Positions 7,353 to 52,151 of a stretch of 64,000 nt of DNA are shown one piece after another. The stretch covers positions 127,782,001-127,846,000 of the forward strand of contig NC_059427.1 in assembly GCF_021028975.2 (NCBI RefSeq). Direction: 5' to 3'. Every line of letters starts with the position of its first letter. Position 1 is the stretch's first letter. The notes beneath the pieces are model-generated. The model was not told where the DNA came from. It saw only the letters and a program-made list of their open reading frames with translations, and did not search any database. A program made the translations under genes and the position numbers. Source of the stretch: Sphaerodactylus townsendi. Taxonomy: Eukaryota.

Positions 7353-8666
7353 TTCAGAATGGCCTAATTTTGGTCCCATCATGCTGCCTCCATTTCCAAA
7401 AGTTGCTAAGGGGAATGGGTGGGGTGGAGGTGCTCTGAATAGATACAGGCCTTGACTCTGCCACACGTGCTTAGGGTTTTGTCCACAAATACTATGAAAC
7501 AGAGAAAATGAAATTCCTTTTCTTCCCAGTGTTGGTGGATGCTGTTGTGCCTGCTTATGGGGATATCCATTGAACTTAAGAGCTACATTTCCCACCCTTT
7601 TGACTGTCCCTGGCTGCACAACAGCACCCTGGCCTTAAATCAGAGGCTTACAGTGGATGTGATCTGAAACAAAGAAGCAATTAATTGAAGGCCACCCAAT
7701 CAGTTTTATGGCTCAGCAAGGCTTTGACCTCTGGGTTTAAATGTGTGAAGTCTATGTTTTTTCCCCCTACAGTGGCTCTCCCACAATCTCAAATTAATCA
7801 AACCACATTATTGAAAGGGTCTTCGCTGTATTAAACAGAAAAGCTTGTTTTAGTGTTTGTTTCAATGGAACTGTCCTCTGCTAAATCCATTGTGTACCAG
7901 ACAGTCAAATAGTAATTTAATCTGTAGGTTTCATGAGCAAATGAAAAGTCAGAAAGATGGTTCTCTTGCCCTGTCACCTCTTTCTAACCAAGGCAAGTGT
8001 ATGTAAAAGAACATAGTTCACAGACAGCTCACGATTGCTAACTGTATTCTGTTTAAGACTTTGGACACAGGTTCACAAACAATTGCCTGCCAACTATTAA
8101 AGTGGGCACTCTGTCATGAAAGCTTATGCCAGAATAAATGTTAGTCTTTCAAAAGGGCAATCCAAATGAGGAGTTGAAGCCACATTGGAAGCAGCAGAAG
8201 CCCTATGCCAACATCCATTCCCACTGTGCTACACATTGGCATGGAGCCCCTTACCTCAGCGTTGGCCTTCAGTGTGGATGCATGGCAGCTGAAGCTGGAA
8301 GCTGGCCCCTGAGTGATGGGCCTCCCACACAGTTGCCCACACCAGCATTGTGGGGGGCATTCCAGGGCATTCCTAGAGGTAGAGGTAACAGTTGGCTCCC
8401 ACTGCTCTTTCAAGCCAGGAATGCCCCCTCCCAGCAATGCAGATTTATGCCACTGAAAAGTCTGGTGTAAGTGTGCAATTTGATTTTCCAGGGAATTTTC
8501 CCTGGAGCCCGCATGGACCTATCTTTTGCCTGTAGCACTGAAAAAATGGAGTGTTACATGGAGAGCGGTATGGAGTGGTATGCTGTTACATGTATTAGAG
8601 CAGTATATATGACAAGTTGGTCAGAAAATGTGATTGGAAAACTTTTTTCTTCCCTGTTGCTTCTAG

Positions 8667-8785
8667 GGGTTTCTTTCAACAGCGTTTACACACAGATTTG
8701 GAGAGTTCTCTTACACTTGGCTGCTGATCCCTACCCAGATGTCTCAGACTTGGCTATGAAAGTGCTCAACAGCATTGCTTACAAG
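8667..8785 (+). CDS. RPTOR: Raptor coding exon (about human exon 21): (G)VSFNSVYTQIWRVLLHLAADPYPDVSDLAMKVLNSIAYK
   Basis: Pyrimidine tract + TAG acceptor at 8664-8666 and AAG|GTAAAT donor. 119 nt, phase 1->0. The peptide matches recalled human Raptor residues 801-840. Confidence 0.97.
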
Positions 8786-9923
8786 GTAAATCTCCACGTG
8801 CTTCTGAGTTCCAGTTTCCAAACCTTGTGCCCGTTGCAAGAAGATGGATCTTGTTCTTGATATTTTGGAAGTCTTTCTGAAAAAATTACCAGTAAACAAC
8901 AGACTGTTGAATGCCTTGGAGTAAGGCATAAATTTCTCAGTGCCCATTATTTCTTTTGGTTTGTGGTCAGCTCTAAGGTCTGGGTAATACCACTTATGTA
9001 GAAAAAAAGATTTGCTTTTCCCCAAATAATTTTTTGCCTAATTCAAGTATAAAGCATCTGGGAAAAAGAAAACTGCAGAATTGTTAGTATTGGGCTTAAA
9101 GCATCTCAGAAGATAACTTTGTCCCATCACTTTTAACTACCTGATTCCTTACTGTGGTCCCTCTGCTCTGAACACAATGTGCAGCTCACATCTTCTTTCA
9201 CTAAAGAGTTAAAACTGACTCTTGACATCACCTCTGAATCTATCATCTGAGAGTAGAAAGATAAAGGAGGGGAAAAAACCAAGCTGCAGGTGTCCACGTA
9301 GAAATTACTGGAGGAATCAGAATATGGAAGGACGTACACAATTATTTCAAATATAGCTTTTCTTGGATGTCTAGCTAGTAAAGTTGGCCTGACGCATTTT
9401 TTGATTATTTTCTTTGCAAACTTGTTTAGATTATGCAAGTGAAAGTAAGACTGGATTGCAGATTGAAGCCACAACGGCTGCCCAGTGCAGGTGATCTAGT
9501 ACATGTGAGTCAGCATGCAGACACTCCATCCCACTCTTCACCTCTCTTTTGAAAGCACTACCATCACTGCTTTCCTTCATTTCGCAAGGATGATTTGTTT
9601 GTTTTTTTATCTCAGAGGCTGCTGTCACGATTATTGTAGAAGTACTAGCTCAAGGAGCTTCAATAACTGGTCTTGGTATCACATGCCATTCGTGATAACA
9701 AATCTTCTGCCAAACAGCAAAGCACTCCATAAACACTTGGTATATTTGATTCTCAAATACCTTTATACCTGCTCTCACTAATATGCAGCTGAAGATCATT
9801 TGGACATTCATCACTCCAACAAATTAATAGCATGAATGAGTCCAGTGTAGATGAGATATTTAACCGATGATTCAGCCAACGTTTAAGATTCAAGTTCCTG
9901 AGTTACTGATGGGATAAAAGATG

Positions 9924-18337: not shown

Positions 18338-18441
18338 GCAACCATTAATGCCCGCCCCCAGCGCATCCTTGACTCATCGTCTCTCACACAATCTGCGCCA
18401 GCCAGCCCTACCAACAAGGGTATGCACATACACCAAGTGGG
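18338..18441 (+). CDS. RPTOR: Raptor coding exon: ATINARPQRILDSSSLTQSAPASPTNKGMHIHQV(G); includes S855/S859/S863-equivalent phosphosites
   Basis: ttcctAG acceptor and GG|GTAAGC donor. 104 nt, phase 0->2, in frame with both neighbours. Contains the TQSAPASP motif. Confidence 0.97.
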
Positions 18442-18567
18442 GTAAGCTACTTATAACTTAAATTCCTTGTCATCCACAACTGTTTGTACTAAGGGCTGGT
18501 GTGTGTGTATGTGCATGTATGTTTGCATAAATATTATTCTCATTTAGGCTTGGCTTTTATACTGTTA

Positions 18568-20134: not shown

Positions 20135-20309
20135 AGGATCACCACCAACCACGAGCACCAGTAGTTCCAGTCTGACAAATGACGTAACAAAGCAACCTGT
20201 CAATCGGGACATTTCATCTGTAAGACCGGCAAATGTGGGGGTTCAATACACTCCCCACTCCCACCAGTTTCCCAGGACAAGGAAAATGTTTGACAAGGGC
20301 CCAGATCAG
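20135..20309 (+). CDS. RPTOR: Raptor coding exon: GSPPTTSTSSSSLTNDVTKQPVNRDISSVRPANVGVQYTPHSHQFPRTRKMFDKGPDQ (S877 equivalent and claw segment)
   Basis: tttactAG acceptor and CAG|GTAAGG donor. 175 nt, phase 2->0. Confidence 0.97.
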
Positions 20310-21507: not shown

Positions 21508-21618
21508 ACAGCAGATGATGCCGACGATGCTGTGGGACACAAGAACTTCATGTCAACCACAATGCAGACAGGGTTTTGTGACTGGAGTGCCAAGTATTTT
21601 GCCCAGCCAGTGATGAAG
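21508..21618 (+). CDS. RPTOR: Raptor coding exon: TADDADDAVGHKNFMSTTMQTGFCDWSAKYFAQPVMK
   Basis: Pyrimidine tract + aacAG acceptor and AAG|GTACAG donor. 111 nt, phase 0->0. Confidence 0.97.
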
Positions 21619-37238: not shown

Positions 37239-37344
37239 ATTCCAGAAGAACATGATTTGGAGAGCCAGGTCCGCAAAGAGAGGGAGTGGAGATTTTTGCG
37301 CAATGCTCGAGTTCGGAAGCAAGCACAGAAAATCATCCAAAAAG
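37239..37344 (+). CDS. RPTOR: Raptor coding exon: IPEEHDLESQVRKEREWRFLRNARVRKQAQKIIQK(G)
   Basis: ggcAG acceptor and AAG|GTAAAT donor. 106 nt, phase 0->1. Confidence 0.97.
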
Positions 37345-40537: not shown

Positions 40538-40652
40538 GTATTTCAAGACTTGATGATCAAATCTTTCTGAACAGGAACCCGGGCATGCCCTCAGTAGTCA
40601 AGTTTCACCCATTCACCCCTTGTATAGCAGTGGCTGACAAAGACTGCATCTG
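40538..40652 (+). CDS. RPTOR: Raptor coding exon (start of WD40 propeller): (G)ISRLDDQIFLNRNPGMPSVVKFHPFTPCIAVADKDCI(C)
   Basis: cctAG acceptor and CTG|GTAAGA donor. 115 nt, phase 1->2. Translated by hand because the ORF track does not show it. Confidence 0.97.
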
Positions 40653-40966: not shown

Positions 40967-41091
40967 TTTTTGGGATTGGGAAAAGGGAGAGAAACTGGAT
41001 TATTTTCACAATGGAAACCCACGGTATACCAGGATCACTGCCATGGAGTATTTGAATGGACAAGACTGTTCTCTACTCTTGACTGCTACAG
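40967..41091 (+). CDS. RPTOR: Raptor coding exon (WD40): FWDWEKGEKLDYFHNGNPRYTRITAMEYLNGQDCSLLLTAT(D)
   Basis: CTAAT branch-like motif, pyrimidine tract, ttAG acceptor and CAG|GTCAGT donor. 125 nt, phase 2->1. Confidence 0.97.
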
Positions 41092-42470: not shown

Positions 42471-42601
42471 NNNNNNNNNNNNNNNNNNNNNNNNNNNNNN
42501 NNNNNNNNNNNNNNNNNNNNNNNNNNNNNNNNNNNNNNNNNNNNNNNNNNNNNNNNNNNNNNNNNNNNNNNNNNNNNNNNNNNNNNNNNNNNNNNNNNNN
42601 N
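42471..42601. other. Assembly gap (131 N)
   Basis: Run of N. The flanking exons are phase-compatible, so no canonical exon is missing here. Confidence 0.99.
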
Positions 42602-43915: not shown

Positions 43916-44020
43916 ATGATGGTGCTATAAGAGTGTGGAAAAACTTTGCTGATCTGGAGAAGAATCCTGAGATGGTAACTGCCTGGCAGGGCTTATCAGA
44001 CATGCTGCCAACAACACGTG
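43916..44020 (+). CDS. RPTOR: Raptor coding exon (WD40): (D)DGAIRVWKNFADLEKNPEMVTAWQGLSDMLPTTR(G)
   Basis: Pyrimidine tract + AAG acceptor and GTG|GTAAGT donor. 105 nt, phase 1->1. Confidence 0.97.
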
Positions 44021-48987: not shown

Positions 48988-49713
48988 AAATTCCCATTCA
49001 ATTATGAAGCTTACAGGATGATTTTGGGCCACTCTAGTATTCCCTGATCTACTTCACAGGATTTTTTTAGAATAAATGAAAGAAAACTGTGAGCTATACC
49101 CACTGGAAGAGTTCAGGCAGAGATGACAGAATCAGTCTTCCCATCGTTATTCAAGTATTCTGCCATTTGTCTCAAAACACTTCCCTGAGGACTGAAAGAC
49201 CCTTGCAAGCAAAATGAGCCATATTTTGGGGCACTGCAATAGCAACATGGAATCAACTAAAATCTGCTCTTTTGGCTGCTTCTGCTTAGGTAAGCCGTGA
49301 ACAGAAAGCAAAGGGGGACATTTTACTTGATTTCTGATTATCACTGCAGCCCCTCCCACCACTCCACCTCCATCCATGGAGCATCTTGCTGGAGAGGCCC
49401 CTTGTGGTCCTCAGCAGTTCCAGGACAAATGGCACACTGCCTGAAGAAGGGAAAGAGGAGGCAAGATCCATTCCTCCCAACACTTTCCCATGAACTCTTC
49501 CACTCACTCCAGCCCAGTGTATGTTTTCCTGAGCTCAATGAAGAAAAAGTGGGATTTAAAAAGTCATAGTTTCATTTTAGTTACACTGTGGCAGACTTTG
49601 CAGTGTTGAAAGGCCAATGCTGGTTTGTGTGAAGGTCATACAAGAGTCCATGTAGAACACAAAGTCAGTTTCTGATACAAATAAGTTACTTTAGATGAAT
49701 GGTTTAGCAGAAA

Positions 49714-49770
49714 GGAGGAGGAGGAGGAGGAGGAGGAGGAGGAGGAGGAGGAGGAGGAGGAGGAGGAGGA
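49714..49770. repeat. (GGA)19 microsatellite
   Basis: Read directly from the sequence. Confidence 0.95.
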
Positions 49771-50033
49771 ATTTGGATTTATACCCCACCTTTCTCTACT
49801 GTATGGAGACTCAAGATGGCTTACAAGCTCCTTTTCCTTCCTCTCCCCATAACACCTTGTGAGGTAGGTGGGGCTGAGAGGGTTCCAAAGAACCGTGACT
49901 AGCCCAGGATCACCCATCAGGAATGCAGGAGCGTGGAAGCATATCTGGGTCACTCAGGTGGAGGAGTGAGGAATCAAACCTGGTTCTCCAGATTAGAATC
50001 CACCTATTCTTAACCACAACACCACACTGGCTC
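49771..50033 (-). mobile_element. tRNA-derived SINE (antisense)
   Basis: Reverse complement of the 41276/48744 family. Its tail expands into the adjacent GGA repeat. Confidence 0.8.
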
Positions 50034-51135
50034 TCAGAAAGCACAGAATAAGCTGTTAGCTAGGCCTCGAAACTGGTACGAAGAAGACATGTCACTTCCT
50101 CTGAGCATAATTACCATTCTGTATAATAATACTTGCTCCAAACAAATTTGTGAAGGACAAGCGGGGCAAGTAACAGTCTTTTCCTGGGTGACATTGGCAG
50201 CCCACCTAGCCAAGGTTTTTGTCTGCCTGCGATCAGTAATGGATGTTAGCAGTCTGTACAGCAAATCATCTTGTTCAAGGGGATCCCCTACTCTTGAAAT
50301 GGGGCTGTGTGTTTCTGTCAACTCGCTTTCCGTTCTCTCAGATTTAAATAAGTGAACTAGACCTACTTGGACAGAACAAGCCGGTTCTCTTGCTCAAATA
50401 CATGGTGTTCTGTGGCAAAGCCCAAGGACAGCTAACCTCAGTATGTATTTCTAATGCCATATCTTTATCGCTGTACTGCTGCCACCACCCTCAGCTCTTC
50501 TCATTATCCAGCTTTCTTTCCGATGACTTCAAATGAATCCTCTCGTACCACTAATTTCCCCCACTTAAGCAGTTGTTTGAGCACAGCCTCTGTAAATTGC
50601 TCTGCCTGTCTGACGAGGGCTCATTAGCAAATCATTGAAGCGCACTGAATTGGAGCCCATTAGACTGTTTCACAACCAAGCTGATGGCTCAGTGTGTGAG
50701 GCCTAAACAACACATACGTCCTGTTTTGTGTTTATCTTTCTCCAAGCAGGTGTTTTATGCTGAGGGTCAATTAGAGCAGTTTTTCATTTCTCACTCTCCC
50801 TTAGCAATGGAGGTGTTTTGATCTAGGTCAATGGGAAGGGGTCGTTCTTAGAGGAGAAAATTGCCAACAATATGGAGATAGGAGCAAAAAGAAAAAGGGG
50901 AAAAAAGTGCAATCTTGTTTTTCTCCCCATGGTTAATGGCTTCCAAGGACGGCTGCAGTGTTCAAGCTATTTGTCTGCCTTTGTTCCTAAATGGAGACCT
51001 CTTCTGCTTCTCTCTTAACTGTGTCCTTTTCTGTTCCTTTTGGGTTGCTTTTTCTAATCCTTTTTTAAGATTTGTTTTGCTTTGGCTGACAAACTTACCC
51101 TTAGCATCAACCCCTTAATCCCTGTCTTCTCACAG

Positions 51136-51183
51136 GTCTGACCCGAAGGGTTTCAATCTATCTTGACAGAAGTAAACAGGGAG
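51136..51183 (+). CDS. RPTOR: Putative alternatively spliced 48-nt cassette exon of Raptor: (G)LTRRVSIYLDRSKQG
   Basis: About 140-nt pyrimidine-rich upstream tract, CCTTAAT branch-like motif, ttctcacAG acceptor and GAG|GTGAGT donor. 48 nt, phase 1->1, open in the Raptor frame. Confidence 0.75.
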
Positions 51184-51649
51184 GTGAGTGCTCTCTTTCC
51201 TCTTACCTACAATCAGCTTGGGAGGGGCGGTTCTTCTAATTCATCTTTTTTTTAAAAAAAAATTACCATTCCTTCTGATGTCTATTGGGTTTTGTTAGTT
51301 TTTGGAAGGCTGGTTAGCTTCTTAAGCCCCTCTGTCATGCCTCGTCTTATATTGCCTGTCTATAATAAACATTGTTGACTTCTAAAGTGCGGTGTCTAAT
51401 ATCCTGTCCAGACAGGCTTCTGTGACTAGTGGGGGGGGGGGGGGAATGAAGGGGGGAGATTTTTCTTTGTGTGTTGCTTCAGGTGCTTGTTCACAGAATG
51501 GGGATTTCTTTTGAAAATGTGTGGAGAATTTTTTTTAATGTCAACACTTAAAACTAGGATTGTAATGAGGCTACAAAACCCAGAATCTGCACACCACTTC
51601 TCCCACCCGCACCTGGTCGTCCAACATTCTGGTATGCTTCAACAGGATA

Positions 51650-52151
51650 CAGTGGAACCTCGGTTTTCGTTGGTAATCTGTCCGAAAAGAATCGATGAAA
51701 ACTGAAACTGATGAAAACCGAGGCAAACTTTTCCATAGGAATCAATGTAAATCCAATTAATCTGTTCTAGGCACTCCAAAAAACATACCAAAAACACATT
51801 TTTGGCGAATAAACATAGCATTCAATGCTGAAAACAATAACAAATAATAATACTAGGACCAGCTTCAGAGCCAGTGGACCAATGTTGCACCAGAAAGCTG
51901 TCCCAAGAGGTCTGTTTCTGACGCCTCTTTAAGATTTGTCTGAAATGGGGCAAGATGTCATTAAACAAGTTGTAGACACGACCTGCAACAGCTTTGTCTG
52001 GGTGATTTTTCTCCACAAACTCCTGCACCTTACTGCAAATTGATGAAAACCGAGGCAAATCAATGAAAACCGAGACACATTTTTCACTGAAAAAAATCAA
52101 TGAAACCTAAATTGATGAAAAGCAAAGGCAATGAAAACTGAGGTTCCACTG
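51650..52151 (-). mobile_element. Tigger/pogo-like non-autonomous DNA transposon
   Basis: TIRs CAGTGGAACCTCGGTTTTC / GAAAACTGAGGTTCCACTG flanked by TA on both sides. Internal minus-strand peptide (HFRQILKRRQKQTS) resembles a Tigger transposase C-terminus. Confidence 0.85.

Follow-up and report, generated by a model that had tools for sequence, protein, structure and literature searches.

A conserved 48-nucleotide alternative RPTOR exon that very probably adds 16 residues to the WD40 region of Raptor

Results

The 3' part of RPTOR

The window analysed here, a stretch of 64,000 nucleotides (nt), carries on its plus strand the 3' part of RPTOR, the gene of Raptor, which is the substrate-recruiting subunit of mTORC1. 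Its exons were located by direct reading, by block-wise alignment of a cDNA contig, and by tblastn of a RefSeq protein (Table 1). When compared with the window by tblastn, isoform X1 of Sphaerodactylus townsendi Raptor is 100 % identical in the bodies of the exons for all blocks that stay within the splice sites, including the block at 51135-51185, and Anolis Raptor matches at 83-100 %. By this match and the shared exon peptide, the window very probably derives from S. townsendi or a very close relative. The constitutive exon upstream of the cassette exon ends in phase 1 with ...CCA ACA ACA CGT G/gtaagt (...PTTR; a slash within a sequence marks a splice site here and below). The next constitutive exon downstream, which encodes GAGMVVDW, is absent from the window, and the downstream junction is therefore not readable there.

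Two further features of these introns are a run of 131 N at 42471-42601, between the exons at 40967-41091 and 43916-44020, and a trinucleotide simple repeat at about 49700-49790, one frame of which would read as ~24 Arg; the latter is intronic and lies 1.4 kb upstream of the cassette exon.

Table 1. Position of RPTOR exons and of features around the cassette exon, in window coordinates
Feature	Position	Strand	Basis or remark
RPTOR exon	about 8645-8788	+	tblastn block only
RPTOR exon	about 9430-9519	+	tblastn block only
RPTOR exon	18338-18442	+	tblastn block only
RPTOR exon (...QYTPHSHQFPRTRKMFDKGPDQ)	20136..20309	+	start taken from tblastn block, not from an inspected splice site
RPTOR exon	21508..21618	+	cDNA contig alignment, tblastn
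RPTOR exon (IPEEHDLESQVRKEREWRFLRNARVRKQAQKIIQK)	37239..37344	+	cDNA contig alignment, tblastn
RPTOR exon (GISRLDDQIFLNRNPGMPSVVKFHPFTPCIAVADKDCI)	40538..40652	+	direct reading, cDNA contig alignment, tblastn
RPTOR exon (CFWDWEKGEKLDYFHNGNPRYTRITAMEYLNGQDCSLLLTAT)	40967..41091	+	direct reading, cDNA contig alignment, tblastn
Upstream constitutive RPTOR exon (DDGAIRVWKNFADLEKNPEMVTAWQGLSDMLPTTR-G), donor joins cassette exon	43916..44020	+	
Conserved island, ~100 nt upstream and ~55 nt downstream of the exon in relatives	51016..51240	+	contigs from four runs of other organisms
3' splice region: pyrimidine tract (82 % C/T) ending cacAG; CTTAAT branch-like motif at 51114-51119	51111..51135	+	
48-nt alternative coding exon of RPTOR, phase 1 to 1, encodes (G)LTRRVSIYLDRSKQG	51136..51183	+	direct reading, orthologues, cDNA contigs, tblastn
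5' splice site GTGAGT, GAG before it	51184..51189	+	top donor score in 20 kb of intron

A 48-nt open exon between strong splice sites

The cassette exon is situated 7.1 kb into the RPTOR intron downstream of the exon ending ...PTTR. As read directly, its acceptor is ...ccccttaatccctgtcttctcacAG/GTCTGACC... at 51136 and its donor is ...AACAGGGAG/GTGAGT after 51183; a longer reading of the same bounds gives ...ccccttaatccctgtcttctcacAG/GTCTGACCCGAAGG...AAACAGGGAG/GTGAGTgct, with a length of exactly 48 nt. Joined in phase 1, the codons are G/GT CTG ACC CGA AGG GTT TCA ATC TAT CTT GAC AGA AGT AAA CAG GGA G/, i.e., a stop-free translation of GLTRRVSIYLDRSKQG (G-L-T-R-R-V-S-I-Y-L-D-R-S-K-Q-G) with one base left over for the next codon. 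An earlier note on this DNA had described strong splice signals that delimit 48 nt, in phase 1 to 1 and stop-free after CGT-G, and the sequence at 51136-51183 reads exactly so.

In a rough weight-matrix scan of splice sites, which covered the 20 kb of this intron inside the window, the donor of the exon ranked first and its acceptor was within the best eight. The pair 51136/51183 was the sole acceptor/donor pair to pass strict thresholds (~0.02 expected by our own estimate, the thresholds having been set post hoc), and among the five pairs that passed moderate thresholds in the 20 kb it was the sole frame-preserving open one. Given thresholds chosen after the candidate was known, this ranking favours the exon in an only suggestive manner.

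Other origins of the signals were considered and rejected: (i) a repeat or transposon origin of the exon, as no second copy of the exon island occurs in the window, and (ii) a recursive splice site, the GTCTGA recreated after the acceptor being a poor donor. Several TCTT/CTCTCT motifs are present near the exon, and Rbfox GCATG sites near it are absent.

Conservation of the exon and its surroundings

Sequencing runs were searched with positions 51090-51230 as the query. All sampled words are contained in 5 large runs, and one third to half of them in 18 small runs, which stem from five other organisms and have 61-531 million letters; none of the runs found to contain the query is recorded as RNA. 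Four small runs were assembled on 50416-51855 (1,440 letters), and each yielded one contig over about 51016-51240, unbroken across both splice sites and with no joints, that either stops inside the conserved island or continues into sequence unlike the window. The contigs of these four relatives are unspliced, genomic-type sequence and are uninformative on splicing. Within the core of the island (51092-51205) there is a single difference among the four relatives; the exon differs from that of the window at one position, 51141 (A>G, Ala for Thr), in all four alike, and synonymous changes in the exon do not occur among them. The last 20 intron nt and the donor hexamer show zero differences in the four relatives, and the differences listed for the outer flanks of the island amount to ~4-11 %.

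As the small runs contain just the island, at a contig depth of 7-58, they look like target capture; they are probably DNA, perhaps from target-capture libraries, and the region around the exon may serve as a locus for phylogenomic capture.

More distant copies came from a phmmer search of 1.84 billion representative proteins with the 44-aa read-through open reading frame (ORF; 51105-51236). All ten matches are ORFs on unspliced contigs that are otherwise unrelated and have only ...GLARRVSIYLDRSKQGGEC... in common, i.e., the exon together with the codons of AG and of the GTGAGTGC donor. Contigs were retrieved for nine of the ten matches, with P0003 left out, and the orthologous exon was found in 12 unspliced contigs from other runs, which represent nine distinct exon sequences. 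Every one of these nine has a pyrimidine tract (73-91 %), (c/g)cAG, a 48-nt exon, and GTGAGT; identity to the exon of the window is 85-90 %, and more than ~20 nt away from the exon, in either direction, it is no better than random. Exon, frame, and splice sites, the conservation of which the earlier note had singled out as a check, are hence kept in other species, namely in nine distinct distant genomic copies and in four relatives.

Regulated alternative exons commonly have conserved flanks. Here, the intronic flanks are kept in relatives and have diverged in distant species, a pattern suggestive of splicing-regulatory sequence at the level of the lineage; a short exon (48 nt) with conserved intronic flanks is also what is looked for in a tissue-regulated short-exon programme.

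The remaining match, P0003, is a 336-aa ORF with GC- and Pro-rich flanks that carries AGLARKVSIYLDHSKQGGEC. It reads GLARKVSIYLDHSKQG, with the AG and GTGAGTGC codons intact, and differs from the exon by two conservative changes that leave R-K-V-S. It may come from a mammal. Like P0003, the mammal-like contig proteins P0021 and P0025 could be of human origin, and these two enter only a protein alignment.

Coding constraint on the peptide

Among ten distinct exon sequences, 10 columns are variable, of which nine are silent in the Raptor frame, compared to two and none in the other two frames. The third frame has a stop in most copies, and the copy in the window has stops in both other frames. 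For this frame bias, the binomial probability is ~4e-5, in which the columns are treated as independent events although they are not fully so. The silent changes are at third positions or are CGA/AGA and CTG/TTG exchanges, and the sole amino-acid change among the ten sequences is the Thr of the window itself. Because the variable columns are almost all silent in the Raptor frame only, the pattern reads as that of a translated exon: on this codon-level evidence, the exon peptide is under purifying selection, and the signature is not that of a nucleotide-level element.

At 51141, the window has ACC (Thr), and every other copy seen has GCC (Ala), i.e., four relatives, nine distinct genomic sequences, two cDNA contigs, and 120 proteins. 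Among the copies seen, Thr occurs outside the window only in the RefSeq isoforms of Sphaerodactylus townsendi.

At the protein level, R-R-V-S-I and the Leu at -5 are invariant in all 120 listed insert-bearing proteins and in every aligned DNA copy. The rest of the peptide, (I)Y-L-D-R-S-K-Q-G, is nearly as constant, with 15 of 16 positions identical across 100 clusters that range from eel to birds and a marsupial. Changes are rare and mostly conservative, comprising Y to C/S and S to T (salmonid/esocid), D to E (Crotalus tigris), and A to T (window). Because the neighbouring residues are almost as invariant, the constraint seen in these sequences is not specific to the putative phospho-site and does not single out the serine.

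Salmonids and esocids provide the main amino-acid variation seen. Their exon copies (L014; P0018; P0036-P0039; P0055-P0075) are 51 nt long and have an extra Gly (SKGQG); in one salmonid paralogue group, Tyr is changed to Cys or Ser (VSICLD, VSISLD), and in some copies Ser is changed to Thr (DRTK).

Spliced transcripts and alternative use

In two cDNA contigs from other species (L013 and L014), the exon is joined precisely to the PTTR exon on one side and to the GAGMVVDW exon on the other. L013 matches six exons of the window in successive blocks of 77-95 % identity, continues into the 48-nt exon, and then passes directly into the GAGMVVDW exon; L014, which is salmonid-like, contains the 51-nt version of the exon in the identical spliced context. 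By their exon order, the two contigs are spliced molecules that use homologous splice sites, and transcript use is thereby known from the cDNA of other species, not from that of the animal of the window. From an unspliced ORF we also reached a 309-aa frog protein (GenBank 'hypothetical protein GDO78_004012 [Eleutherodactylus coqui]', with the UniRef name Raptor), which reads ...LPSTRGGLARRVSIYLDRSKQGGAGMVVDW... and which led to P0017 and P0018, two contig-derived Raptor ORFs with the insert; of the window itself, only the read-through ORF served as a protein query, and the spliced context was read from database proteins.

Forms with and without the insert are found side by side. One 90 % cluster of sauropsid cDNA contigs holds P0017 and P0033 with the insert and P0035 without it. 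Among RefSeq X-isoforms, which are computational predictions, the plus and minus forms are X7 (1351 aa) versus X8 (1335 aa) in Macrotis, X1 (1351 aa) versus X2 (1335 aa) in Crotalus tigris and Thamnophis elegans, X1 (1376 aa) versus X2 (1360 aa) in Anolis, Tiliqua, and Podarcis, and X1 (1374 aa) versus X3 (1358 aa) in Sphaerodactylus townsendi. Because models with and without the insert coexist in several species, the exon is, as judged from these gene models, alternative.

Annotation in public databases

An insert-bearing query of 925 aa from Salmo trutta gave 690 matches. The best 120 of the 690 all have the insert, and in 100 of these 120 it is exactly GLARRVSIYLDRSKQG. Insert bearers among the matches listed are birds (e.g., Apus apus X1, 1351 aa, representing a cluster of 950 sequences), lizards (Anolis, Podarcis, Varanus, Sceloporus, Tiliqua, and geckos), snakes (Pantherophis, Pseudonaja, Naja, and Crotalus adamanteus, UniProt A0A0F7Z7I6), turtles, alligator, teleosts (eel, carp, electric eel, sea bass, pike, and salmonids), and a marsupial (Macrotis lagotis), usually in the form of a 1351-aa "isoform X1" (1335 + 16). 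No insert was seen in placental Raptor models, among which mouse X4, Peromyscus, Pygathrix, and Rousettus span the junction, all without it.

For Sphaerodactylus townsendi, isoforms X1 (XP_048344389.1, 1374 aa) and X2 (XP_048344390.1) contain exactly GLTRRVSIYLDRSKQG, which corresponds to residues 1147-1162 of XP_048344389.1; X3 (XP_048344391.1, 1358 aa) is 16 residues shorter and has no insert. By these matches, the exon is already annotated in >100 species, apparently including Sphaerodactylus townsendi in RefSeq. Full-text searching of the literature for the exon or the peptide returned no paper.

The earlier note had presented the sequence as a hidden, in-frame Raptor cassette exon in the WD40 region. 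Its central part is well supported, by the cDNA contigs, the silent columns, and more than 100 protein models, with the insert placed after the equivalent of Arg1123; the alternative splicing that it proposed is likewise reflected in plus and minus models within one species. The word 'hidden' has to be dropped, as RefSeq, Ensembl/UniProt, and GenBank models of >100 species contain the exon, and the note's own warning of a possible earlier listing by automated pipelines proves entirely right, given X1/X2 of Sphaerodactylus townsendi in RefSeq.

Position of the insert in Raptor

In an alignment to solved human Raptor (5H64 numbering), in which the frog fragment covers human residues 1047-1335, the insert follows the residue aligned with human Arg1123. 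The beta-strands VTAWQG and VVDWE, on either side of it, belong to the same blade of the C-terminal WD40 propeller. The canonical 1335-aa Raptor of humans (PDB 5H64, 6BCX, 6BCU) has flanks nearly identical to those of the insert-bearing form, but is without the 16 residues: in the sequence of the solved structure, Arg1123 runs straight to Gly-Ala-Gly-Met, as the earlier note had stated. The 1351-aa Raptor forms (e.g., X1 of Apus apus and of Pantherophis guttatus, A0A0F7Z7I6 of Crotalus adamanteus, and X7 of Macrotis lagotis) use the same exon at the same junction and add 16 residues, differing from the window by Ala (GCC) for its Thr (ACC at 51141); the salmonid/esocid versions differ by their 51-nt length and extra Gly.

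An AlphaFold model of the frog fragment, built on a 58-sequence alignment, displays a propeller-like series of strands (mean pLDDT 60, pTM 0.59); an earlier model on an 11-sequence alignment was unusable (mean pLDDT 38.6). Frog residues 69-99, which include the insert, are modelled as coil with pLDDT < 50, in a model whose mean is only 60, between strands 64-69 (VTAWQG) and 102-106 (VVDWE). In the usual WD40 topology, such a position corresponds to the loop that connects strands one and two of a blade, and the model weakly suggests that the insert is an exposed loop.

Kinase-site and docking motifs

The PKA substrate consensus is R-R-x-S/T followed by a hydrophobic residue. The earlier note had pointed to this consensus in the insert, and R-R-V-S-I is indeed present and invariant. 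With Leu at -5, it fits a basophilic-kinase site of the PKA-type, PKD-type, and related classes; R-R-x-S in general fits many kinases and is frequent by chance. Basophilic phospho-sites are known elsewhere in Raptor, with Ser722 and Ser792 phosphorylated by AMPK (14-3-3 binding) and Ser791 by PKA. Like the insert, these sites have an Arg-rich context upstream of the Ser, and they offer a precedent for kinase input via Raptor. They are, however, constitutive and located in the linker before the WD40 domain, whereas the serine of the insert is in an alternative exon. Searching full texts for the peptide brought up no experimental record for this serine.

Two docking motifs were tried and rejected. 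A 14-3-3 mode-I site (R-S-x-pS-x-P) fails at +2, where the insert has Tyr and Pro is required. A PP1-docking RVxF motif fails at its last position, where R-R-V-S-I has Ile and F/W is required; the insert only resembles this motif, which we take to be [RK]-x0-1-[VI]-{P}-[FW] and an example of which is RRVSF in the muscle glycogen-targeting subunit, regulated by PKA.

Discussion

Taken together, positions 51136-51183 are very probably a genuine and ancient coding exon of RPTOR that is alternatively included, and the 16 residues it adds would serve as a recognition element in a surface loop. Spliced between the ...LPTTR exon and the GAGMVVDW exon, it contributes 16 residues, which are GLTRRVSIYLDRSKQG in the window and GLARRVSIYLDRSKQG in almost every vertebrate sampled, such that inclusion converts the 1335-aa Raptor into a 1351-aa form. 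The insert would be displayed as a loop at the surface, and its near-invariant sequence could be what a partner recognizes. The most plausible role would be that of a basophilic-kinase acceptor (R-R-V-S-I, Leu at -5) and/or of a docking site that alters Raptor regulation or binding; the phospho-site is a tentative component of this explanation, suggested by the motif.

Several readings in which no such protein element exists deserve consideration. Decoy sites are many in long introns, five pairs having passed moderate thresholds in 20 kb here, and no run recorded as RNA was found to contain the stretch for this species; 51136-51183 might accordingly be a chance pseudo-exon with splice signals that are never used. 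This is next to impossible, however, being refuted by use of the exon in cDNA contigs, by selection at the codon level, and by its presence in >100 annotated proteins, Sphaerodactylus townsendi RefSeq models among them. A conserved non-coding element of the enhancer or ultraconserved type, open in frame by accident, would agree with an island that reaches ~100 nt upstream and ~55 nt downstream in close relatives without a synonymous change, and with the many small runs that hold just this island in the manner of a capture target, but conservation in distant species collapses outside the exon and its splice sites, and the changes inside the exon are almost all silent, making this explanation extremely improbable. 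The exon might instead be terminal, with its donor read through into ...SKQGGECSLSSYLQSAWEGRFF* (stop at 51234-51236) and its transcript polyadenylated downstream of the AATAAA at ~51364, at the cost of most of the propeller. Both the read-through ORF (...GGECSLSSYLQSAWEGRFF*) and the AATAAA are in the window, and one GenBank model, from a goby (P0019), reads through the donor; against this, the conserved island includes neither the read-through tail nor the AATAAA, the tails are wholly different between species, the donor is near-consensus, and P0019 looks like an annotation artefact, so a terminal exon is highly improbable. The goby model itself (Mugilogobius chulae) runs ...SKQGGEGMVLCVF... 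into the intron and loses the rest of the propeller, and is probably an artefact.

For an alternatively included coding exon, the question then concerns the function of the insert. The earlier note had favoured a PKA-type (or CaMK/PKD-type) phospho-loop that, through tissue-specific inclusion, would couple cAMP or Ca2+ signalling to mTORC1. In keeping with this, R-R-V-S-I and the Leu at -5 are identical in 120 of the 120 listed proteins and R-K-V-S is preserved in P0003, the insert is predicted to be in a coil, and Raptor is, as a matter of general knowledge, regulated at other basophilic sites. On the other hand, conservation is not focused on the motif, IYLDRSKQG being almost as invariant, the R-R-x-S consensus is unspecific to any one kinase and common by chance, and full-text searching for the peptide came back empty; we therefore regard the phospho-loop as somewhat unlikely in this full form. 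The insert could also be a phosphorylation-independent structural or docking element, i.e., an isoform-specific interface of the propeller that alters partner binding or Raptor stability. Identity at 15 of 16 positions across 100 clusters, with rare and mostly conservative changes, exceeds what a short linear kinase motif would require, but the predicted conformation is a low-confidence coil, and we consider such an element possible without holding it to be probable. A composite of these ideas is more speculative still: the invariant insert may act as a kinase-controlled switch of the propeller, with an input or partner absent from the 1335-aa form, that was kept since before the teleost/tetrapod split and has perhaps been lost, or left unannotated, in placentals. 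As suggested by the sequences, this is rather improbable.

As a discovery in this genome, the exon is minor, since it is already in public gene models. Its interest is instead in the second form of Raptor that it points to in many vertebrates, with a peptide that has barely changed and that contains a textbook basophilic-kinase motif. From teleosts to tetrapods, conservation of the peptide spans over 400 million years. Every solved Raptor structure found is of the 1335-aa form, as is, to our knowledge, the Raptor of nearly all mTORC1 biochemistry. The insert-bearing form is thus a reasonable lead for mTORC1 biology, and a comparison of the Raptor isoforms could show whether splicing tunes mTORC1.

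Further variation in RPTOR splicing was encountered along the way. RPTOR_v2 is reportedly a 1177-aa human splice form without part of the HEAT region; this is another splicing event of RPTOR in another region, and it removes 158 residues, whereas the cassette exon adds 16. A 1177-aa flamingo model labelled 'isoform 2' is among the cluster members listed. In squamates, the lizard X1 models have 1376 aa versus 1351 aa for the plain plus-insert form, pointing to at least one further alternative segment of ~25 residues in RPTOR models of this group. For salmonids, isoform X3 of a Salvelinus species (P0020) is predicted to carry another insert, PTTRG-QPSSSAHS-AGMVVDW, at the identical junction, and X2 of the species has the GLARRVSIYLDRSKGQG insert; there may be a second alternative event at the PTTR/GAGMVVDW junction in these fish.
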